From NCBI GenBank assembly GCA_009103225.1, contig RHPI01000797.1, positions 247,064 through 311,063 on the forward strand: a DNA stretch of 64,000 nucleotides, read 5' to 3'. The notes under the pieces are model-generated. The model did not search any database. It was not told where the DNA came from and worked only from the letters and a program-made list of their open reading frames with translations. Made by a program: the position numbers and the translations under genes. Of this stretch, positions 4,251-17,049 are shown piece by piece. Source of the DNA: Chlorokybus atmophyticus (Eukaryota > Plantae > Mesostigma and Chlorokybus algae). Position 1 is the first letter of the stretch, and each line of letters starts with the position of its first letter.

Positions 4251-7200
4251 ATGGCGGCGATGGCAACGGCGTCGTTGTCGGCGACGGCGGCTTCGTCGTT
4301 AGGATCAATTAGTATTAGGCAGCCTCTTGTCAACCCCTTTCGCAGCCGGTTGGCGTTGCTCAGGTTGTGGGGCGGGAGAGGGAAGCTTGACGGCAGGCCC
4401 AGTAGGACTGCGGGTAAGCTACTGGGCTGACTACTATGCCGTGTTTGCATGTTGACCGTGATAAGGGTCAAAGTTCAGGAACATCCATTCAACGCAATCA
4501 GGCACAGTTGGTGTGATGTACATGCTGGTACGCGCAAGGCATTAGCACAGTCATTGGTTTCTTGGCTAGGTGCTGGATGTTTGATTGTGTTTTCTGTTTG
4601 ACTTGGGTGTCGGTCGTTGTGAGCCTGGTGGTGTCTATTGTTTTCTATTGCAAGCCGCTAGCTGACACTAACCTGATCTGTAGTCCTTGCTCTGGCACTC
4701 GTTCTCAGCTGTCATCACAGCTTGCACTTATATTATATGTATGCTTATCCCAGGCTTTTGATCAGTCGTCTTTCCAAGTGCCATGCAACCATAATTTTAA
4801 GCATCCTCAAGCGGTGGTCGATACCTTCACTCACTCACACAAGCATTCATTCGGTCACTCATCTCACTATAGGTAGCACAATACAACTTAACAAGACACC
4901 ATGACTGACAGCGCAAAGCATCAATGCCTAATTGAAGCATGCAGGCAAGCAGCTAAAGTCAGTTGTGATGGCGAAGACTTGATCTAGAGCTTGTGTTGTA
5001 AGCGCCATTCGATCAACATGGCGCATGTTAGTCTTACTTACCATTGCTGCTATCCTTTCTCAGTTGTGCATGTGCAAGCTGCTTACACCCGCAGCTCGGA
5101 CCGAAGAGACCAAAGAAGGTGAACAAGACACATCATTGTCTAGCACTTCGTACACATTGCCATGTTCACCAACTCACACTACGTGCAGGCCGAAAGAGTA
5201 TGCAGACGACAGGCCAATAAGCAAACCGCCAAGGCAAAGGCAAGACGATGACTCACACTCGAGCGCACGTTACCGCAACAACAACGATGACGATTATGAT
5301 AGAAGCAGTAGCAGCAGCAGCAGTACTGGCAGGTTCAGACCCAGTATTGACAGACACAACACCGGCGCTAGGCGTAACAACAGCATCAACGCGCCTGCGC
5401 GCGTGTTTAACGGGCTGTTAGGATCAAAATGGCGGCAGGAAGTCAAAGACATGGACTTCTACAGCGACACGAGCTTCGAGAGCATCGGTGCTTCGGAGGA
5501 GGTTATCAAGGCAATGACCGCCCTCGGCTACAGGTACTTGAAACTGACTCTCCGCATAGAATGAGCCCTAATCCTAGTAAGCTGCTAGGCGCTGCTTGTG
5601 GTGTGCGTGTTAGGGATGTGGGTTTGATTCTCTCTCTTGTTCAGTCGGCCCTCGCACATGCAGGCCCTGGCTTTTGGCCCTCTTGCACGCGGTGAATCGT
5701 GCATCCTTGCAGACCAGGTGATGCTACGACATTGTTTGGTTCACTTTGTTGACTGTGCTACACTCTGCATGCGTGCATGCGTGCGTGCGTGTGTGCGGTA
5801 CACAACTTGCACACCGCGCATGTAGTGTCTGTTTCCCCTAACACGTGTACAGGCTACCGAACCTTGCAGTTGCGCATCGTGTCTGTAGGCATACTTCATG
5901 CGTGCATGTCGTACCTTACTTATAAACACAGCAGCAAATATATCCTTTACTGGCGTGCAGGCGGGGTCGGGCAAGACGCTGGCATATTTGCTGCCGACGG
6001 TCGAGCGATTGCGTGCGAAGGAGAAGGTAGAAGGGATGGCGCCAGGCCGAAGGCCGTCTGCCATTGTGCTCACACCCACCGCTGACCTCGCCGCACAGGT
6101 GGAGGGCAATCACAGGGCTGTGATACAACTCACGCACATGCACACATGCGCGCACAATTATAGTCATAACAGCATATTGTGTTATACTGTCATTGGGCAG
6201 GTTCACTCTGTTTCGCGTGCTTTGGCTCGCACGGTGCCCTTCCGCTCACTATGCGTCACCGGCGGCTTTCCTGTAAGTGAAACAAGCAAGTTGTTGTTGT
6301 TGTTGTTATTGTTGTTGTTGTTGTTGTTGTTGTGATGGCTGTTAGATCCTTTAAAGCTGACTGGTTGCTTATCTGTTGTGCTGCATGCATGCATGTAGTT
6401 GAGAGAGCAACGCAAGAATTTGGAAGCTGGCACGGATGTTGTGATCGGCACCCCTGGCCGCCTCCTCGCCCTCGTGGACGCCGAATCCCTTCTCCTCGAC
6501 TCTGTGCAGACGTACGATTACAACACTTAGTAGCAGACACACCATGTGCTGAAGTTCATACTGTGTGGCAGTATTGTTGTGGATGAGGTGGATGTGATGC
6601 TGGACGACCCCGACTTTGCGGATGCGTTGGCGCGGGTTCGCGCGGAGTGCACGTCCGCGCAGTTCGTGTTTGTGACTGCGACGCTGACGGGGGACATGCA
6701 TGCGCGCATTGGTGAGGAGTTTGGTATCCGTGCCAACGATGATGGCAACGATGGCATCACGCGCCTCTTCGGCCCTGGCCTTCATCGCACCGCCCGAGGT
6801 CTTAAAGAGGTGTGCCTCACACACTCCAGCGCTTGCTCACTCGCTTCTGCATCCACCACACCACTCACTCATTCCTCCATTGACTCACTTGATAAACATC
6901 TCGCTCTCAGTCAGTTGTAAAATCAGTCATGGCGTCATCACTCACTTGATCACAACTTTGTGACTCACTCATTATTTGACTTGTTCACTTAGCGTGATTT
7001 GGGTGCTGGTTGGTTGGTGAACACTTGGTAATGTATCCAATGTATACAAATTGTAGGTGTTAGTGGATTGCAGTGGCGGGGACGAGCGCACGGAGGAGAG
7101 CGCGTTCCTGCGCAAGAAGGATGCGCTGCTTCGCGCACTTAAGCAAAACCCATGCCAGCGCACCATTATCTTCTGCCACAAGATCGACACCTGCCGCAAG

Positions 7201-7998
7201 GTTTGTGTGTATGTGATTGAGAGATGCGTGTTGTAGTGTCGATGCAGCGAGAGATATCGTTATTGAATGCGCCATGTGGTTCATGCGTAGCTTGAGAACA
7301 TACTCAAACGCGAAGACAGGCAAGAGCGCAAGCTAATACCATTGGCGTACCATGCAGCCATCAGGTGTGTTATGGAAGTCAACACTGTTTATGCACACGT
7401 TCACAACATGGCATGGTTTTAAAGAGATTACAGAGATTACAGAGATTACACTCTGTTGTTGTCTTGTGCTTTTCAGCCCAGAGATGAGAGCGCGCAACCT
7501 GAGTCAGTTCATGCAGCCGCCTGGGGGCGTGCCGATGGTGCTGATCTGCACGGACCGCACCTCGCGCGGGGTGGACTCGCTGGATGTCGAGCACGTTGTG
7601 CTCTTTGACTTCCCGCGAGACCCTAGGCGAGTGCCGTCGTCATTCACTGAGGCCAACTTGTCGAGTTTAATCTTGTTGTCTCTGTATTTGAACGTGATCA
7701 ATGTGTGCAGTGAGTATGTCAGGAGGGTTGGGCGTACAGCAAGGGGAGCGGGCGGCCAAGGGCTGGTCACTGCGCTTGTCCTTGGTAAACTGGTAAGCTT
7801 CCTTTGTTGCACGTGTGCTTGCTGCATGTGAACAAAGAAGCTCCCTTTATCATGCCTGACAACCGGATGCGCGTGTTGCGTGTAATTTTTGCATTGGAGC
7901 GGTAACAGTTGTTCGACATGCAGGTGCCAATGGCGCAGCAGATCATGGCAAGGAATGAAAAGGGGCTGCCTGTACATGAGGTGCCACTGGAGTTTTAG
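4251..7998 (+). CDS. RH50: Plastid-targeted DEAD-box RNA helicase, RH50-like
   Basis: Ala/Ser-rich transit-peptide-like exon 1 (MAAMATASLSATAASS). Q motif (SFESIG..RPSHMQ), motif I (ADQAGSGKTLAYL), Ia (LTPTADLAAQV), GTPGRL, DEVD, TAT, IIFC, LICTDRTSRGVD and FDFPRDPSEYVRRVGRTARG. C-terminus GLPVHEVPLEF*. Confidence 0.88.
6290..6333 (+). repeat. (GTT)n microsatellite in an RH50 intron
   Basis: About 14 GTT units with one ATT variant. Confidence 0.95.
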
Positions 7999-9046
7999 AT
8001 GAACACACAGTGCGGTGATATCATGCAGCTGATGCATCACTACTTTAGCGCGCTCATGTCAGCTAACATCACTGCCAGCACTCCGGCAACAAGTTGTGAG
8101 CGATTAGCCCGGCTGTGCTATCTCTTACGCTTTTTACCACTGGTGTGTTCAAGCCTAATTATGCCATGCTACAGGCTTGGTTGCATGCAATGCTGCCAAC
8201 AAGCAGGTTTTTTCAGTAGCTTTACTGCGCAAGCATGTATTGATTGGTTGAATTGCCACTTGCGAATTTTTCTGGCTTCTCTGAACCGGGTGCTGTTTTG
8301 CACTTGTGGTGTAAATGCTGCCTGCACGTGTGCTTGTGCACCTATGCATGATGGCATGTGTGCAGACTGTGTTCGTGTGGCTGTAACTGTGTGTGTGCGT
8401 GTATGCGTGCGTATGCTGCATGGTAAGAAGCAACGGTCGCAGTGTGGCACTGTCGCGTATATGTATATAGTAGTGAGTTTATTTCCTATTGTGTTTCCTA
8501 CTGCATTACAACCACAGATGTCACTACTGCTGTTCGTACCATTTTTAAGATGTTGGTGCACTCCGCTTGCAGCGCGAAGAGCATTGCAATGTGACTGCCA
8601 CCATGACAGTCTCATGGCCTCGCTCTCTCTCTGTAGTATAAGGACGTGCACCACACAATGTCATGGTCTTGATCCTGTGCGCTCGCACCACACGCTGCTT
8701 GAATTGTTTAACTGCTAAGCAATACAGGCGTACAGGCATCAAGTTGGGAAGGCACTGTCAGCAAAGTGCACCTTGGAATGTGTCGTCAGCCCCATCACAG
8801 GTCAGCAAGCCAGCATGTGCGCATGTGTGCAGCGCACAGTTTGGGTTGCCAGACCAAGCTGAATGTCAAGCCAGCAACCTCTGCAACTGGTACCTCACAG
8901 CAGCAACAGTTTATTCTCACATACAGAATAGCATGTGCATGTTGGGACAGGCGGTTATCAACAAATGGGTGTGGGAAGTGTTAATGTAGTCCTAAAATCA
9001 ACTAGCATCTGTTAATCTTGTGGGCACACAGTGGGCACTCTTATTA

Positions 9047-12000
9047 TCAATCCAGCTCCACACACGCCCGCATCATCCTTTTGCCGCACTTGCCGCAGCG
9101 CAGCCGCGCATTGAGCATCGCTGTCTCAGAGGCGAGCTCCACAACAACGCCGGGACTCCCGCAGTCTGCGCTTGGACAAATCCACGTCTCTCTCACCGCT
9201 ACTATCCTCATTCTGGCTTCCAAGTTGCAGCTCACGCTGGCGCCAACCTGCTCCACTTTGCTGCTCACACGCTCGGGCACGGGGTCTGTCTGTGCCCTCG
9301 CTTGGGCTGCCTTTAGAGTATCAGCCGGCCTTGCCCTTGGCACAGACATGGATGCATGCGGTTGAATGGGTGGATGTCGATCGGGTTGCGTGTCTGTTTG
9401 CCGTTGCGACTTGAGGGGTGTGCTTCCGACTACTGGCTGCTTCAATGTTGACGGCTGCGACGGTCTGTTGGCAGTGAAAGCGAAGGTTTCGCCGTACAGC
9501 GGCCTTGCAGAGCCAACGTGTGAGGTTGTGTGTGTTTTTTGCCGGCTGTCAAGCTGACCAGGCTGTGCGGGGTTGCAGGATGGCTGCTGGGACTGCATGT
9601 TGGCACCACTCGCGGAGTATTGTTGGAACTGTCGCTGTGTGTCTGCATGTAATGCCCTGCCTTGGCTTGAGCCAGCAACTGAAGCGGCGCCGGCGCCTTG
9701 CGATGGACCAACTGCGGTTGCTGTGACTGGAGAGCTGAAGGCAGGTACGGTGTCCATGGCGGCAGCATCCATGTCTGGTGTCATATGACCAGCGTGCGAA
9801 CCCTTGGGCTTCGTTTGCCGCTGCGCGTCCGCGGGCTTCTTGTCACGCTTGCGCTTTTGCACACGTGTCCCTGCGTACTCCACCTGGCATCCGGCAGATA
9901 CATCAGTCCAGTGCGAACGCAATTGAGTTCTTCAGCTGTGTGTGTAAAGAGCAGTACACTAGACCAGACTTGTGCAACACGGATACAAGTGCGCCGGCAT
10001 GTGCACACATGCATACAGGAAAAGCGGCGTGCGGCACAGCTTGAACGGCATGAACAAACTACACATCTTACAATGCCCTCTGGAAGCGGTGCTTGGTCTG
10101 GCAGCCGAGTAAGCTTAAACTCAATGCTCTGATTGGCTCCATTTTGAACGTATTGCCAGCTTGTAACTCTGTACAGTCCGGAATACATGTAGCCTTCTTG
10201 CACGCGTCGTATCAAGCGCACTGGCTGCAGCGTACCACATGATGCATCAATATAACGACACATGGCAGAACGCTTCCAACAATATCAAACTGTAAGCATA
10301 CATAAGCATACCAGTTCAAGAGCGTGGCTGTTGACCAGTGCTTGGTTGCCACCGGAGAGCGGCGCATCTTTCAGCGGCAATCCGTCTTTGTCTTGGACCT
10401 GCTGGCCCATGTAATGCACTGCAACATCAAGTGTGCACTGTTACACTTGCTTGTGAAAGTAGTGGTAAGTCAACTGTAAAAGGAACACACATGTATACCT
10501 GTTTCTCCCTCGTCCAAGTTTTTGTACTGGCCGACCATAACAATTATAGGTGACACCTTGATCCCCCCATACTCCATCATGTCAATGCCTGCTCTCGGCA
10601 TGTACTTCATGCCCACACATTGCATCTCCATAAAAGTTCTGCTCCCAAACATTGACAGTCGAGATCACACAATGGACCGAGACATGCATTGGCTGTGCAG
10701 GTATGATGCAAAAAGCCAAGCGGCATGCACTGCTCACTAACCGGAATATCATGCCGACGGGGATGCCAGGGACTTCGCCAATGCGCTTTTGTTGATTGAC
10801 CAACAGCCCCTCCGCCCGCAAAGCCTGCATGTAATGCATAAGCTATCAATAAACAACTGACCACTTCCAGTGGCCCACGATTACTGCAATTTGTAAGTTG
10901 ATACCCGTCGAGCTTCGTCATAAATAACTACGGCGGTCCATTTTTCGCGTGCGGACTTGAGCGCGACAATGCGCTCCCGATGCAGCCGCAGCACTTCTCG
11001 CACCATGTCTTCGGTTATCGGCCCTTCCGGTTCTGCGCTTGCCCTGTAGAAAGCAAAGGAACACAAGGTCAGCAGGCAGTGCGCCACAACCATACAGTCA
11101 CGCATTGCCCGAGCAACCGGCTACAGAAGTTGGTGACCCAATATGATGGGCTTGTACACAGTGCTGCAGAACCTGTTTTTCCATGGATTTAAAATATGGA
11201 CAGAATGGCGACCTAAAACACACTTCCTTCACATACACATTCTGGTACCTGACCGCTTGCGAGGTGCCAGGCGCATCGTCCACATGCTGCTCCTCTTGCT
11301 TGACTTGAGCCTGCTGTTCAAACTCTGGCTCCAGTTGCTCCGCTTCTTCATCGTTGTTGTCCTCCTCAACGTACTCCTCCTCTTCATTCTTTACCAAAAC
11401 CGCGTCCTCCTTTTCGTCCTCCTGGTCCTCTGCATCCTCCTCTTCGTCCTCCTCTGAATCCTCATCTCCGATATCCTCCTCCTGTGACTGTTCGTCTTGC
11501 TCAGACGCGCCCTCTTCCTTATCCTCATCCTCTTCCTCCTCATGATCGTCCTCGTTGTCGTTGTCGTCCTCCACCTCCTCCTCCTCCTCTGCCAGTGTAG
11601 TGTCCTCAGCATGCTGTCGGCTTGCAGAGGCTTCACCTCCAGCAACCTTCTTAATCTGCAAAATGCAATGGCAACAAGTTGGTGGCACACTCAAGTAGCC
11701 GTAATGTCTTCTTTGCAAGGAAATAGCTTACCGCAGACAGTACTTCTCGCAGGCTTTGTGGTAAAGATGCAGACAAATATGGGTCGCTGCGAGCAGAAAC
11801 ATAACACAATAAGTATATTTACTGTAAGTATGTTTACTGTTGCTTACGTCAGCCCACGCATAATAAAGAAAACAACCGCTGTATGCTGGAGACGAGCAAT
11901 CAAACTCTAGCGCTGAGAGGAGTAACAAGCGGTGCCATCAAAGACAGACACATGAGGACATCACTACGAGTTACAGAGTCATACTGTTGCTTTACCACAG

Positions 12001-13434
12001 CGTGTCCACGCAACTGCATGCAGCTGGTGTACCTGGAGCGACGGACTGGTGATCTGCACGACACTTCAGTTCCAGAGTGATCCGGCAATGGTGCCGGCAG
12101 GCATGGCGAGCTTTCCCGCCTCCGAGTGGATGGAGATGGTGGTGGTGGTGAATAAGAAGGGCTGCGGGTGGTAAAGGGAGAGAAGTCGGGAGAGAAAGGA
12201 GCAGAGGAAGGAGAGTGTTGATAGGTAGGTGATGTTGGAGGGCTGGAGTGAGGACTGGAGGCGTAAGGCGATGAGGGAGAGTAGTAATGTGGGGTGAGCT
12301 GAGGACTTCCCGGAGAATAGGGTGAGTTCTCCATGGCCTTTTGGGGACTGTACTGAATGCTTCTGGGAGAGTAAGGCGCAGGAGAATGTGGCTCAGCAGA
12401 TGTGGGACCATGCACGGGGGAGTTGCCAGGAGAGCACCAGGGCGGCGTGCTGGGAGTGTAGAGGACGGGACTGTACACCGGACTGTTGGGGGAATGAGCA
12501 CACACCGGGGCGTACTGCTGAGCAGGAGAATGTGGCTCAGCAGGTGCGGGATAATATACAGGGGAATTGCCAGGAGAGCACCAGAGTGGCGTGGTGGGAG
12601 TGTAGAGGACGGGACTGTACACTGGGCTGTTGGGGGATTGAGCACACGCCGGGGAGTACTGCTGATCAGGTAATGTGAGCAAGTTGTGTGGGCTGTGAGT
12701 GAGTCGTGGCGTCTGGGGTGAGGTTTCTGGACTGTGTACGCATGACCACACTGGTCTGTAGGGTGAGCTGTGAGGTTCGTAGCCTGATGGGACAAATCTG
12801 CGCGGCGGACTTTGCGACCTAGATAACGATGGCAGCGGTGAGGATGCCCTGTACTCGGGGGTTCTTGACTTGCTTCGTGACCTGTGGCGCGGCGGTTTAT
12901 GTGCGGCGTATTCCATGCTCGAGTATATGCGCCGCCAGAGGCTAGCTAGCTGCCCGTGCTGATCACTAGGCAAAGGAGACCTTGCTCTACTGCGGTCGCG
13001 AGAAATGGCACGATCTGCTTCGTCATGATGGCTTTTGCGCTGTCGGGAGCGACGTTGCGATGACCTTGATGGTGAAGTCTGCGGCCATAGCAGGCTCATT
13101 ACTAAAACTAGGTAAAAGAGACGCCCGCGCAAACACAGGCAGTTTCAGAGCAAGCAAGCTTTCTCATCGCACAAACACTCGCGTGCAAGCACGCTTGTGT
13201 ACCCGCACGCGCAGGAGCATCATCAAAGAGCGAAGTGTAGAGCAGCAAGACATACGCAGGCTCTCAAATGCTTACACTGTGAAGCCAAACGTAACATTGA
13301 GAACAGCACGCAAGCTGCATGCAATAAACAACACAAGTGCTTGAGTATGCTTTAGAAGCAGCTTTCACATTTACATCCCTAGGAAATGCAATACAGCCAG
13401 TACGTACCTCACGAGCATGGCGACGTTTAGCCAT
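9047..13434 (-). CDS. SRA-YDG domain protein (KYP/SUVH4-type SRA, no SET) with RS-rich, CTD-like YSP-repeat and acidic regions and a C-terminal C4 zinc ribbon; about 997 aa
   Basis: Ten exons join with consistent phases at GT-AG sites: 13434-13408, 13078-12033, 11786-11732, 11655-11249, 11043-10905, 10824-10742, 10638-10499, 10418-10312, 10224-10072 and 9883-9047. SRA motifs are KRIGEVPGIPVGMIFR, AGID, IVMVGQYKNLDEGETVHYMGQ, GGNQAL, PVRLIR, YMYSGLYRV and FKLTRLPDQ. The SRA exons are secure; the link to the upstream exons and the first exon are inferred from splice phases. Confidence 0.8.
12377..12664 (-). repeat. Two tandem 144-bp (48-aa) in-frame coding repeats
   Basis: QQYSPACAQSPNSPVYSPVLYTPTTPLWCSPGNSPVYYPAPAEPHSPA followed by QQYAPVCAHSPNSPVYSPVLYTPSTPPWCSPGNSPVHGPTSAEPHSPA. 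Copies at 12664-12521 and 12520-12377. Confidence 0.95.
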
Positions 13435-14035
13435 TGTTCGACTTGTCTACACAACCACGACCAGGGGTTACAAGTACAACAGCTCTGTTCACAAAGGCAG
13501 CGTTAGCTCTGGCATGCACAAAGGCACAAGTGGCTGTCGTATGAGTACGCTACTGCAGGAGTTGGTTAATGTGTAGTTGCACCGCAGCCACTAGAACTTG
13601 CAAGCAACAATGCTGCCAGTTTAGATAATGCATGCTACGTTTGCGATACGGCAAGCTGCACAGCAAAAAGCTGCAAACCATGGCTGCTGTACTCTAAATT
13701 CATGAGCAACGGCGGCTGTACGGCTTCTGCCTACGAGACATCAGTAAACACGCAGCGGTAGAGCTGAACGACAAACCAAGGCTTTGCTCTCTCCGAACCT
13801 GACTGCAACTCCTCACACTCATGCACTGCAACACAACCAACCGTATGTGCACTCCAGAGGTGCGTGCCAATACAATATCACCAAAACACAACGCCCCACC
13901 TTTGCAAAGCAGACAGGCACCGTCAAATCCTTCACGTCGTTCCAACCCAGCCAGCACCAATCCTTCCGTGTTCAGCACCCCTCCCGCCAGCAACAGCGCC
14001 GTGAGCCCCGCACGACCCCGACCAGCTCGCCGCCA

Positions 14036-14040
<5 letters not shown>

Positions 14041-14070
<30 letters not shown>
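14041..14070 (+). repeat. (GCC)10 microsatellite
   Basis: Direct reading. It lies upstream of the SRA gene start on the minus strand. Confidence 0.95.
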
Positions 14071-14072
<2 letters not shown>

Positions 14073-14700
14073 TGCTGCTGCCCCGACAGACGCCGCTGCA
14101 TGCGCACAAGCACTGGCTGCACTTGCTCAGGACTTTTATTTCCTTACATGCACGAGCATGCAAAGCGACCTGCTCGAGTCAAGCAGTGAGTACCGTAGTA
14201 AGCTAAGCTACATTTGCGGCTGAGTGCGGTCGTGCGCAGGGAGTTGTTGCAAAAAGTCTGGTCAAGCGCAGGTCGCTGTTCAGGTCGCTTCTCGAGAAGT
14301 TATCAGGAGTGTTCAGGCCTTGTTAATAGTTCAGGTTCAAGGTTGATACATTCTTCTCATGTGCTTGGTGCAGGTCAAGTTATATTTAAAATGCACTCCC
14401 CTGCTCGGCTGCTGCAGGTTGTTGTCCGTTGGTGCTGCCATTCCTGCACGCCCTTGCACGCACGTAGTGTAGTGTGGTGGTGGTGTAGCTTGTGGTTGAG
14501 CTAAGCAGTGGCTGTACCCCCCGGCCAAATCTCAATTGTCTGGTATTATGGTTTCTTTACTTGTCAGCCCATGAATTGCTGCATGTCTATAATATTGTAT
14601 GCACATTGAGCGTGGACATTGTAAAAAACATCGTGGTAAAACGTTAACGCAGGCTTTGCTGAACAAGCATGTTATGCGCATGCTTACATACTGCTTGCCC

Positions 14701-15915
14701 TTACGGTCTACCCAATCCTACAGCAATGACAATGAGCCGCGCAAAAGCAAATGCAAGCGAGTACCACGCCATGACATTGGTGTGCAAGAGTTGTGCAATG
14801 TCAAACGCGTAACCTTCCTCGTCTTCGTAAATGAAAGCTGCACGTCCATCGTTAAGCGTCGCCATGACACGGACTACGTGCACTGTGAAGTCCGCGATGT
14901 AGTTATCACCCAGCAAGTGGCCCGCTGCACCATTTGAATGTGGCAAAACTGTGGGACAACCACATGCAAACATGACCAGCAGTCTCACGCGCATGTCGTT
15001 GAATGGCTTGGAAGGCCCACTAGGCATCCATTTCAGAGTTGACAATCCCCAAAGCCTTGCCCAACTCCACTGACTCGCTGGAGCATCGGCATCGAAGCTG
15101 TTCAACAGGCACGCCATCTTGTTGTCTTTGAGCCGCACAACATGCAACATCACACGAATCGCATCAGCCCCGTCGCTGCCCCAACCGCCCCAAACTGGAC
15201 ACCGCTGGCTCATTTGCAAACACAGTCTGAACCAGACAGTGTTGTGACTCAAGCCTTCACTGAGGCCTTTGAGCTGCGAAGCAAACAGGAAAGTGGAGGG
15301 TTGACCCTTTCATTTCAACAAATAGTGGCACTTGTCCCACGAATGACCGGTGTGCCCTTACAGTATATGCAGAGGTGGATCGCACAGTCTGTCCATGCAA
15401 GCGGATGTGAAGGATGTATAGATAAGCGTCCTTTCTCAGCATACTCTGATCAGCATCCACCTCCTCGTTAACAACCAGCAGATTGTTGCAGATTGGCGTC
15501 AAGCGCGAGTGCTCGTACTTTGCAAATAGCTGCTTGTATGTGCAAGTCTCCAATTTGTCATGCACCTACGCGCGCATGTGAGCGAGCTTCTCTTTTACAG
15601 CCATGCATTCATGTATGGACACAGCAACTTCAAAACAACTGTACAAATGACAACCCCCTTAGCAAACATGAGCATATGCGATGTGCCGCATGCAGTGGTG
15701 ATGAACATAAGTATATGCACCTCAGCAGCTGCAGCAAAGCCAGTGTTGGCGCAAAGGGACTTCCAAAGGGAGTCCTCCTGGGCAGCTGCACGCCACGCCC
15801 TGCAGACACATAAGCATGCAGCCAAGTCGCGCAATGAGAGACACGGGAACACGCTTACCGCTAGCAAATCGATCAAGCCTGCAACCTCTGATGCTGCGCG
15901 CTGCTCCGGCAACAT
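14701..15915 (-). CDS. F-box protein with an uncharacterised C-terminal domain, three exons
   Basis: N-terminal F-box motif DLLAVSVFPCLSLRDLAACLCVCRAWRAAAQEDSLWKSLC. Phase-0 joins lead to VHDKLETCTYKQLFAK...YLYILHIRLHG and then LKGLSEGLSHNTVWFRL...VMLHVVRLKDNKMACL. Stop at 14701. Confidence 0.72.
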
Positions 15916-17049
15916 TCTGAAGCCTCTGCAAAGGTTTGACAGGCAAGCGTGTCAACAATGTGGCAGCTTGAGTACCCTACATACGGAATGCTACAAGCAT
16001 GGTTGCAGATGCTAAGCTCTCTCTGCACGCAGATTCCTTACGACAGTGTCTGTTTTCCAAGACGCAGCAACGACACAGAGCTCTTTTCCGCTAGCAACCA
16101 TGAGAACAATACATCATAACTGTGCCGCATAACTTTTTTGCATCTAGAACATAGGTTGGGCATGCGGTGGCACACATGGCATTAGACACGCGGGTGGAGT
16201 TCTGCAGCATGCCCCACGCTCTGTTGAGACACATTCTTCCTTGCTTAACAACACAGATTGCCATTATCAATGCTGCCACAAGCACTGCCGCAAAATGCGA
16301 AGTCGACAGTTATCCCCCCTCAACCAGCGATGAACACTGCAACATTGCTGTCAAAGCACATACACGGCTTGAACGTTAGCAAACAGTTGATCAAGTACAG
16401 AGTCCAGTGAATCCCATTGCAGAAAACACACGCACGCAGGCACGCACTTTCATTATTCAACCACCCACCCGTACCGTTATACATCTCTACCACGGCAGGC
16501 CCGCAAAACAGTGCATCCAGATCATACGTGTTTGCTTACTTGTAAGGCGTGGTGCACTCAGTGGCAGCAACACGCGGAAATGCGCGACCAGCGGTCAATG
16601 TCGTCGCAAGGGCGCTTTTGGCATAGCGTTCGCGTTCGTCTCCTCCTCCTCCATGATATACCCCCTCCTCGTCTGTCTCCGACGCTTCGCCACCGCCTCT
16701 ACTTGCGGCCTCGTGCACAATTTGGGTTGGTGGGTTAATACTGGTGCTGGAATTGAGTGGCTGGTTGGATGCAAGGGGCGGCAGCGGTAGTGCGTCGTGG
16801 CAGGGTAAGCTTGCAGCCTCGCTTGCTGCGCTGTATGCTAGCTGAAACAAGCAGCCATATAGAGTTCTTGCCTTGCTCGCTAGTTCAAGCACTGCTTGCT
16901 TGCTGCCGTGCGTGGCTGCATGCTGGCTGTCTGTGCTGGCTTTGCTAATCGGCAGCTGCTGGGTTGCTTTTGGGATGCTTTGTTATTTGTCTTCTTGTTC
17001 GAGACATTGCCGGAAGCGCAATCCAGAAGCTAGGCTGTAGGAACAGTGC

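Follow-up and report, generated by a model that had tools for sequence, protein, structure and literature searches.

Chlorokybus atmophyticus has a real, spliced and expressed gene whose 997-aa product contains an SRA domain as its sole recognisable folded module, with no enzyme domain attached. The combination of this domain with disordered basic, SP-rich and acidic stretches and a four-Cys tail is unusual. From its sequence, the protein probably has no catalytic role and serves as a DNA reader or adaptor that flips bases.

The gene lies on the minus strand and has ten coding exons (Table 1), which total 2994 nt (997 codons plus stop). All nine coding introns have a GT donor and an AG acceptor, and the frame is kept throughout. 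An in-frame TAG is found 15 nt upstream of the ATG and the known 5'UTR is free of upstream ATGs. Evidence for transcription comes from contigs of two studies (X1 and X2), from which the nine coding introns are precisely absent. A single X2 contig of 3255 nt, 95-99% alike to the genome, contains nine of the nine joints and the entire ORF. A single X1 contig of 2091 nt, 100% identical to the genome, has eight joints and extends from the tail of exon 2 to the 3'UTR. The four joints of the SRA exons are present in X1 as well as in the X2 contig, as are both junctions flanking exon 3, which a preliminary description of this DNA had singled out for checking. The in-frame model of about 997 aa proposed there is thus borne out. 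Since one X2 contig bears the entire ORF, the SP-rich exon belongs to the same transcription unit as the SRA exons; the alternative that the YSP-rich ORF (13078-12033) and the SRA exons are separate units is contradicted by the bridging contigs. With a non-coding upstream exon included, the exon count rises from the ten first described to at least 11. The basis for this exon 0 is the X2 contig, whose loose end at 13486 is identical to 13902-13931. Downstream of the stop codon, no additional coding exon is present in the X1 and X2 contigs.

Table 1. Features of the Chlorokybus atmophyticus SRA gene (positions in the window, which is the whole 64-kb stretch of DNA analysed; E, exon)
Feature	Position	Strand	Evidence or detail
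Exon 0 (5'UTR, non-coding; 5' end undefined)	13900..13952	-	donor GTGGGG at 13899
5'UTR intron	13899-13485	-	X2 contig loose end
Exon 1 (50 nt 5'UTR + start codon at 13434; 9 codons, MAKRRHARE)	13408..13484	-	X2 joint 13078/13408
Exon 1, coding part	13434-13408	-	
Exon 2 (348 codons)	12033..13078	-	covered by X2 contig and X1 fragments
Tandem duplication in Ser/Pro/Tyr-rich region (144 nt = 48 aa; 39/48 identical)	12378..12665	-	
Exon 3 (55 nt)	11732..11786	-	joints 11786/12033 and 11655/11732 in X1 and X2
Exon 4 (acidic tract)	11249..11655	-	composition
Exon 5 (46-aa segment directly N-terminal to SRA)	10905..11043	-	joint at about 11042/11248
SRA domain (SAD_SRA, PF02182), exons 6-9	10072..10824	-	Pfam on E7 and E9; PDB SUVH5/SUVH6
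Exon 6	10742..10824	-	SRA part
Exon 7	10499..10638	-	SRA part, Pfam
Exon 8	10312..10418	-	SRA part
Exon 9	10072..10224	-	SRA part, Pfam
Exon 10 (KRKR, linker, Cys motif, stop codon 9049-9047)	9047..9883	-	transcript contigs
KRKR basic cluster, candidate nuclear localisation signal	9845-9856	-	sequence
Cx4C-x21-Cx2C motif, candidate zinc knuckle/zinc ribbon	9086..9178	-	Cys at E10 residues 236, 241, 263, 266
3'UTR (at least 147 nt)	8900..9046	-	X1 contig end 8971; X2 extends beyond 8900

Several other candidates at the locus were rejected. Read-through of intron 9 would be Cys-rich and pre-SET-like, but the intron is skipped in both transcripts and has no pre-SET pattern. Intron 4, whose read-through would contain a C2H2-like motif, is removed by splicing in X1 as well as X2 and matches nothing in Pfam; an in-frame alternative donor lies at 11138. 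Loose ends of the X2 contig at 13166 and 11316 have no match in the window and so belong to other loci. The idea of transposon cargo was rejected, as no inverted repeats occur in 6000-17000 and the adjacent genes, one for a DEAD-box helicase and one for an F-box protein, are ordinary.

Pfam and PDB searches of the SRA domain were run exon by exon. Exons 5-9 encode residues ~513-719. Exon 9 alone passes the PF02182 gathering score (31.3 bits; cut-off, 30.7; profile positions 99-148), and exon 7, collinear with it, matches profile positions 18-57 (E 0.017). In searches of PDB sequences with exons 7 and 9, the best matches, and the sole meaningful ones, were SUVH5 (3q0b) and SUVH6 (6a5k). UHRF1/2 chains were absent from the matches (exon 9 at E ≤ 1; exon 7 at E ≤ 10), and exons 6 and 8 gave nothing meaningful. 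ESM Atlas placed exon 9 with SRA clusters at 0.81-0.83, which is taken as a lead only. By sequence comparison the SRA domain is real, as first claimed, and nearest to plant SUVH5/6 among solved structures. The label 'KYP-type' was less apt, given that the PDB matches did not include KYP itself. In SUVH proteins, two helices N-terminal to the SRA domain pack on it. Exon 5, described earlier as a SUVH-type helical segment, may resemble these helices as they occur in KYP, but it had no match to PDB sequences at E ≤ 10.

When the exons of the transcript were searched against Pfam one by one, no SET, pre-SET, RING or PHD domain was found. Neither of the SET motifs NHSCxPN and ELxFDY occurs in the six frames of the window, and the C3HC4 RING pattern is absent from every frame. 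The HMMER check suggested earlier (PF02182 and PF00856), here run by exon, found SRA and not SET. No pre-SET or SET sequence was found downstream, in line with the earlier statement: there is no Pfam match, the transcript is over by about 8900 and no SET motif is found in 64 kb.

The SRA domain is followed by exon 10, in which a KRKR cluster, suggesting nuclear import, precedes a low-complexity linker of about 215 aa and then the Cys motif. A zinc ribbon, in which two Cys knuckles on a three-stranded sheet bind zinc, had been proposed here. The C4 motif is indeed present, and the Cys pattern is the sole evidence for a ribbon. Pfam returned nothing beyond Zn_ribbon_recom at E 0.63, and the C-terminal 72 aa gave nothing meaningful against PDB sequences. 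A single-sequence AlphaFold2 model of these 72 aa, made without an alignment, has strands, but its pLDDT is 51.9. ESM Atlas gave only unnamed small bacterial clusters for the tail, and a word search with exon 10 found no match among proteins of 153-486 aa. None of the listed differences between X2 and the genome falls inside the Cys motif.

The order of parts is as first described: basic start, Ser/Pro/Tyr-rich region, acidic tract, helix-like exon, SRA domain, linker and Cys motif. Of the known systems, the SUVH proteins (SUVH5, SUVH6, KYP/SUVH4 and the inactive SUVH2/SUVH9) are the closest; the SRA domain is likest SUVH5/SUVH6 among those with solved structures. Shared with them are the GID thumb region, a stacking Tyr, the C-terminal Y-x-G-[LIV]-Y block and a disordered N-terminus ahead of the SRA domain. 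Unlike the SUVH H3K9 methyltransferases, the Chlorokybus protein has no pre-SET, SET or post-SET domain, and the linker and C4 motif replace the catalytic half. SUVH2 and SUVH9 act as readers, yet they retain the SET fold. The idea of an SRA domain reading a DNA mark within a multi-module chromatin protein is shared with UHRF1 and plant VIM/ORTH proteins, from which the Chlorokybus protein differs in having no RING, PHD, Tudor or UBL domain (Pfam).

A possible alternative to the reader or adaptor, though one that we consider somewhat less than evenly likely, is that the protein is an ordinary member of the already catalogued set of SET- and RING-less SRA proteins, an SRA-only protein with disordered tails whose low-complexity flanks have no special meaning. 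SRA homologues without a RING finger have been noted across eukaryotes (bioRxiv 10.1101/2023.01.30.526367), and divergent SRA domains occur in other fusions, for example with AlkB in fungi (PMC4738411); like the Chlorokybus protein, these have an SRA domain without its two classical partner domains. SRA-only clusters of ESM Atlas in fungi and Streptophyta point the same way, as a lead only, and the parts outside the SRA domain are all without a family match. Compared by description only, however, the RING-less or SET-less homologues and SRA-AlkB proteins have no basic/SP-rich/acidic half and no C4 tail. Moreover, no paper was found on a SET-less SUVH-type SRA protein in algae, nor was any relative with the same layout found with exon-sized queries, which are insensitive to full-length relatives. 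An exhaustive HMMER search of 1.84 billion representatives with exon 9 had a sole match, P0001, a spurious perfect tandem-repeat ORF aligned in nine weak stretches. The protein and close orthologues are thus absent from that set, while a 51-aa query is too short to reach SUVH proteins at this database size, so that the blank says little about distant relatives.

The base-binding pocket was compared through the HMMER alignment to SUVH6, read with the residue roles established for SUVH5 (PMC4740795). In SUVH5, Tyr416 and Tyr428 are the stacking aromatics of the flipped-base pocket, Gln392, on the thumb, occupies the gap left in the duplex, and Asp418 (Asp469 in UHRF1) hydrogen-bonds the Watson-Crick edge of 5mC (PMC4740795). 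The equivalent of Tyr416 stays Tyr, but in contrast to the SUVH5 pocket that of Gln392 is Arg and that of Asp418 is Asn (SUVH6 GGYDD aligns with GQYKN), so the pocket acid is missing. The equivalents of Tyr428 and Gln431 were matched by eye only (HYMGQQ with YTGQGG), exon 8 having no PDB alignment. In addition, the YDG motif is YSG and the His of the conserved G-x-H is Lys. The Asn stands in a loop that appears to be shorter by one residue, and the domain may therefore prefer a base other than the canonical 5mC. Divergent SRA pockets elsewhere have been proposed to read other bases (bioRxiv 10.1101/2023.01.30.526367; PMC4738411).

Comparison of X2 with the genome, two very close lineages, reveals that the SRA module is more constrained than the remaining protein. 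Among the differences listed for exons 5, 7 and 9, four are synonymous, two of these being in exon 5, and none is non-synonymous; the SRA module has six differences in all, and the two outside the list could be non-synonymous. In exon 2, nine of the listed differences are non-synonymous against two synonymous, and in exon 4 the counts are five and two. Both indels are multiples of three (an in-frame deletion of 12 nt at 11426 in exon 4 and one of 3 nt at 9535 in exon 10). The disordered regions appear to evolve almost neutrally between these close relatives, and specific docking motifs in them are the less credible for it.

These data bear on a second alternative, that of a decaying or neofunctionalised SUVH remnant which has lost pre-SET and SET and in which the SRA fold is a structural, protein-binding or non-specific DNA-binding module that reads no mark. 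With the Asp418 equivalent changed and YDG replaced by YSG, 5mC reading may be lost, and the change of His to Lys in G-x-H fits as well. Nevertheless, we regard a remnant as unlikely: two lineages express an intact copy of the gene, all four of the SRA-module differences listed are synonymous, and Asn could still hydrogen-bond the cytosine edge.

The N-terminal half is notable for its composition. The first 95 aa or so of exon 2 form a basic, Arg/Ser-rich stretch (20 R, 22 S and 14 RS/SR dipeptides, short and interrupted), and the following 240 aa or so are 60% S+P+Y+T, with 39 SP, 7 TP and 8 YSP. No Pfam family was found in exon 2. Exon 4 has 65 D+E in 135 aa (60/101 in its core), which upholds the acidic tract described earlier, and its Pfam result is a weak compositional match to Nop14 only. 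Tandem Repeats Finder identified the 144-nt unit as the sole true repeat of the Ser/Pro/Tyr-rich region; the 48-aa duplication is also present in X2, whose contig spans the region gap-free.

On one reading of this composition, the stretches rich in Ser/Pro/Tyr and in Arg/Ser would imitate the Pol II CTD and RS domains, recruit CTD-binding and splicing factors to methylated DNA and so couple the mark to transcription or RNA processing, a coupling proposed earlier. In composition the Chlorokybus protein does resemble the Pol II CTD and the RS regions of SR/SRRM proteins, with many S-P and Y-S-P motifs and a basic Arg/Ser-rich start, which are likely kinase substrates. Motifs are also enriched over shuffles (SP, 39 against 15 expected; YSP, 8 against 0.9; heptad-like Y[ST]P.[ST]P., 4 against 0.1). 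However, the four heptad-like motifs are scattered, unlike the tandem YSPTSPS consensus heptads of the CTD, and successive S/T-P motifs mostly lie 3-5 residues apart rather than 7; with a 48-aa duplication as the only repeat, 'Pol II CTD-like repeats' was an overstatement. The RS region stands as a basic Arg/Ser-rich start, but not as an RS domain: its runs are interrupted, RS/SR dipeptides are not enriched across the entire exon 2 (18 against 12.8 ± 3.1 expected) and Pfam finds no RRM or other RNA-processing domain. Unlike the Pol II CTD and SR/SRRM proteins, which have tandem heptads, RRM or PWI domains, the Chlorokybus protein has none of these, and its motifs are poorly kept between close relatives, two of the nine residue changes in exon 2 abolishing S-P motifs. 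CTD/RS mimicry is therefore very improbable. An artefact, either a misjoining of the SP-rich ORF to an adjoining SRA gene or a chimeric assembly, has a negligible chance of being correct: no supporting point was found, and it is already refuted by two independent contigs, one of them identical to the genome, that run from exon 2 by way of exons 3 and 4 to the SRA exons, every splice site being canonical.

As a non-catalytic reader or adaptor, the SRA protein may act as follows. The SRA domain would still bind DNA and flip a base into its pocket, with Arg in place of Gln392 as the thumb residue plugging the gap in the duplex. The disordered basic, Ser/Pro/Tyr-rich and acidic regions, together with the C4 tail, would be phosphorylatable or electrostatic scaffolds through which DNA carrying the mark gains other factors or histones. 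On this view the protein would be a reader or adaptor and not a writer.

A more far-reaching proposal, which we judge decidedly unlikely, is that separate genes encode the reader and writer functions of SUVH in this early-branching streptophyte. An SRA protein derived from SUVH but lacking SET would read a mark on a base, perhaps one other than plain 5mC in view of the change of the pocket Asp to Asn, and its phosphorylatable tails (Arg/Ser-rich, Ser/Pro/Tyr-rich and acidic) would recruit machinery (transcription or RNA-processing factors, histones) in trans. If true, this split would mean that the plant lineage has methyl-DNA readers that form an adaptor class of their own. To our knowledge, plant SRA domains are known almost solely within enzymes, namely SUVH methyltransferases and VIM/ORTH ubiquitin ligases. 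The value of the finding is limited in that rapidly evolving low-complexity sequence makes up the greater part of the architecture and conservation is seen within one species complex. An enzyme-free, expressed and selectively maintained SUVH-like SRA protein would nevertheless show the reader module working as a free adaptor. Its pocket, naturally altered at two positions (Asn for Asp and Arg for Gln), provides a handle on what sets the base preference of SRA domains, and the protein is relevant to how streptophyte evolution built up or dismantled the coupling of DNA methylation to H3K9 methylation.

The ten coding exons (E1-E10) of the SRA gene were derived by reading the minus strand from 8900 to 13600, with exon borders set by arithmetic. 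They total 2994 nt (997 codons and a stop), with all donors GT, all acceptors AG, consistent phases and an in-frame TAG 5' of the start ATG at 13434, which reproduces exactly the exon model of the preliminary description. The stretch is also present as assembled contigs in two public runs, X1 and X2, from one organism and two studies. Aligned to the window, these contigs skip nine predicted introns base for base, including those at the junctions proposed for RNA mapping (12033/11786 and 11732/11655), and the skipped stretches all end CT..AC on the plus strand, equivalent to GT..AG on the minus. In X1, a 2091-nt contig, 100% identical to the genome, spans 8971 to the end of E2 and contains eight of the nine joints, and smaller contigs are identical to parts of E2. 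In X2, a single 3255-nt contig (95-99% alike) covers all ten coding exons, reaching past 8900 at one end and into the 5'UTR at the other. The RNA nature of the runs is a guess of the search tool, but as nine precise GT..AG deletions occur in two samples they can hardly be anything else. The Ser/Pro-rich open reading frame and the SRA exons might have been separate transcription units; the contigs bridge both, as expected of one gene.

Past 13486 the X2 contig continues with letters matching 13902-13931 exactly, which places a further non-coding exon, ending at 13900, upstream of an intron of 415 nt in the 5'UTR. The spliced SRA gene is confirmed in full, with a 5'UTR exon added. There is no ATG in the known 5'UTR.

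Coordinates of the SRA gene, its neighbours and associated sequence features
Feature	Position	Strand	Remarks
E1	13434-13408	minus	coding exon
E2	13078-12033	minus	coding exon
E3	11786-11732	minus	coding exon
E4	11655-11249	minus	coding exon
E5	11043-10905	minus	coding exon
E6	10824-10742	minus	coding exon
E7	10638-10499	minus	coding exon
E8	10418-10312	minus	coding exon
E9	10224-10072	minus	coding exon
E10	9883-9047	minus	coding exon
Non-coding first exon and 5'UTR intron	13485-13952	minus	absent from preliminary model
(GCC)n tract	14028-14069		just upstream of non-coding first exon
Acidic-tract repeats	11426-11478, 11522-11553		short, imperfect, 12-24 nt
Intron 4 read-through	11101-11248	minus	past E4 donor, open for 50 codons
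Intron 9 read-through	9884-10071	minus	past E9 donor, 8 Cys in 27 aa
DEAD-box helicase gene	5898-7828	plus	convergent, downstream; DEAD and Helicase_C matches on separate ORFs
F-box-like gene	15598-15915	minus	upstream, same strand as SRA gene

Read-through into intron 4 encodes a C2H2-like motif (C-x5-C-x12-H-x5-H) with no zinc-finger match in Pfam, and a GT at 11137 is a potential in-frame alternative E4 donor (exon end 11138); the stretch is spliced out in the X1 and X2 contigs and was rejected as coding. Similarly, the Cys-rich stretch of intron 9, which might pass for a pre-SET remnant, is intronic in both transcripts.

Domain and homology searches were run on separate, unjoined exon translations. 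The Pfam SAD_SRA family (PF02182) matched E9 (profile 99-148, 31.3 bits, cut-off 30.7) and E7 (profile 18-57, E = 0.017), with E6 and E8 occupying the profile gaps in collinear order. The best PDB matches of E9 were the SUVH5 SRA domain (3q0b, E = 0.021) and then SUVH6, and that of E7 was SUVH6 (E = 0.024). From these matches the SRA domain is judged real and plant-SUVH-like. It had been called KYP-type; the SUVH likeness stands, while the KYP label goes beyond the data, since no KYP chain, nor any of UHRF1/2 or SUVH9, was among the PDB matches of E7 and E9. E5, proposed as a SUVH-type helical segment, gave no PDB match at E <= 10.

The SUVH5 pocket uses Tyr416 and Tyr428 to stack on the flipped base and Asp418 to read its Watson-Crick edge, with Gln392 filling the gap that it leaves (PMC4740795). 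The HMMER alignment to SUVH6 (PSQAGID in SUVH6 versus PRAGID; SGGYDD in SUVH6 versus VGQYKN), read with these residue roles, retains the Tyr416 position but places Asn at Asp418 and Arg at Gln392. HYMGQQ and YTGQGG, matched by eye only, would retain Tyr428 and Gln431; the loop in between looks one residue shorter, and the C-terminal YDG motif is YSG. Asn at the Asp418 position could still pair with the cytosine edge, so that reading may be altered rather than lost.

Beyond SAD_SRA, Pfam gave only compositional noise across all exons (Nop14 on the acidic tract; Zn_ribbon_recom at E = 0.63). A six-frame scan of the whole 64-kb window found no SET motif (NHSCxPN, ELxFDY) and no C3HC4 RING pattern, and pre-SET-like patterns were confined to simple TG/CA or GC repeats. 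Since no more than about 150 nt of transcript follows the stop codon, the reported lack of downstream SET and pre-SET sequence is borne out. The gene does not look like transposon cargo, because inverted repeats are absent from its flanks.

Forty of the listed changes in the X2 contig relative to the genome were classified. Neutrally, roughly three-quarters of changes would alter the protein. Synonymous and non-synonymous differences numbered 4 and 0 in the SRA module (E5, E7 and E9; two more E7 differences lie outside the list and hence this count), 2 and 9 in E2, 2 and 5 in E4, and about 5 and 7 in E10. Two E2 changes destroy S-P motifs, and the reading frame survives both indels, one of 12 nt in the acidic tract and one of 3 nt in the linker. 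By these counts purifying selection acts on the SRA module, and the tails preserve frame and composition, not sequence.

E2 begins with a basic segment (20 Arg, 22 Ser and 14 RS/SR dipeptides in the first ~95 aa), followed by 240 aa that are 60% S+P+Y+T. Relative to shuffles, SP (39 versus 15 expected), YSP (8 versus 0.9) and heptad-like Y[ST]P.[ST]P. motifs (4 versus 0.1) are enriched. The four heptad-like motifs are scattered, two being copies inside a tandem duplication of 48 aa, whose units are identical at 39/48 residues, and S/T-P spacing peaks at 3-5 residues. Motif positions and spacing reveal no heptad array, so the region, previously likened to Pol II CTD repeats, is better termed Ser/Pro/Tyr-rich low complexity. 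The E4 acidic tract (D+E 65/135 aa) varies in length by repeat slippage, since the X2 12-nt deletion falls inside its repeat array. E10 encodes a KRKR cluster, a ~215-aa linker and a Cx4C-x21-Cx2C end. The four-Cys pattern is the sole basis for the proposed zinc ribbon: this tail has no Pfam family or PDB match, and its AlphaFold2 single-sequence model (three strands) has a pLDDT of 51.9. A second, low-depth X2 contig of 189 nt matches the sequence coding for the C4 motif (9047-9198) at about 93% and diverges directly after the stop codon, which suggests a paralogue or divergent allele with the same tail in the X2 strain.

An exhaustive search with E9 alone returned only a spurious repeat protein and a word search with E10 no match, both searches being nearly blind to full-length relatives. 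SUVH proteins (SRA plus SET) are older than the chlorophyte/land-plant split (PMC1807958), SRA homologues without RING are scattered across eukaryotes (10.1101/2023.01.30.526367), and divergent SRA domains in other fusions may read other bases (PMC4738411). Our literature search found no published description of an SRA protein with this layout. The preliminary interpretation holds in part, with the SRA domain, the lack of SET and the single transcript upheld and the CTD repeats and KYP label judged overstated. The best description of the gene product is a SUVH-like SRA protein that lacks SET and RING domains and has long disordered tails; its most likely role is that of a non-catalytic adaptor or DNA-base reader.
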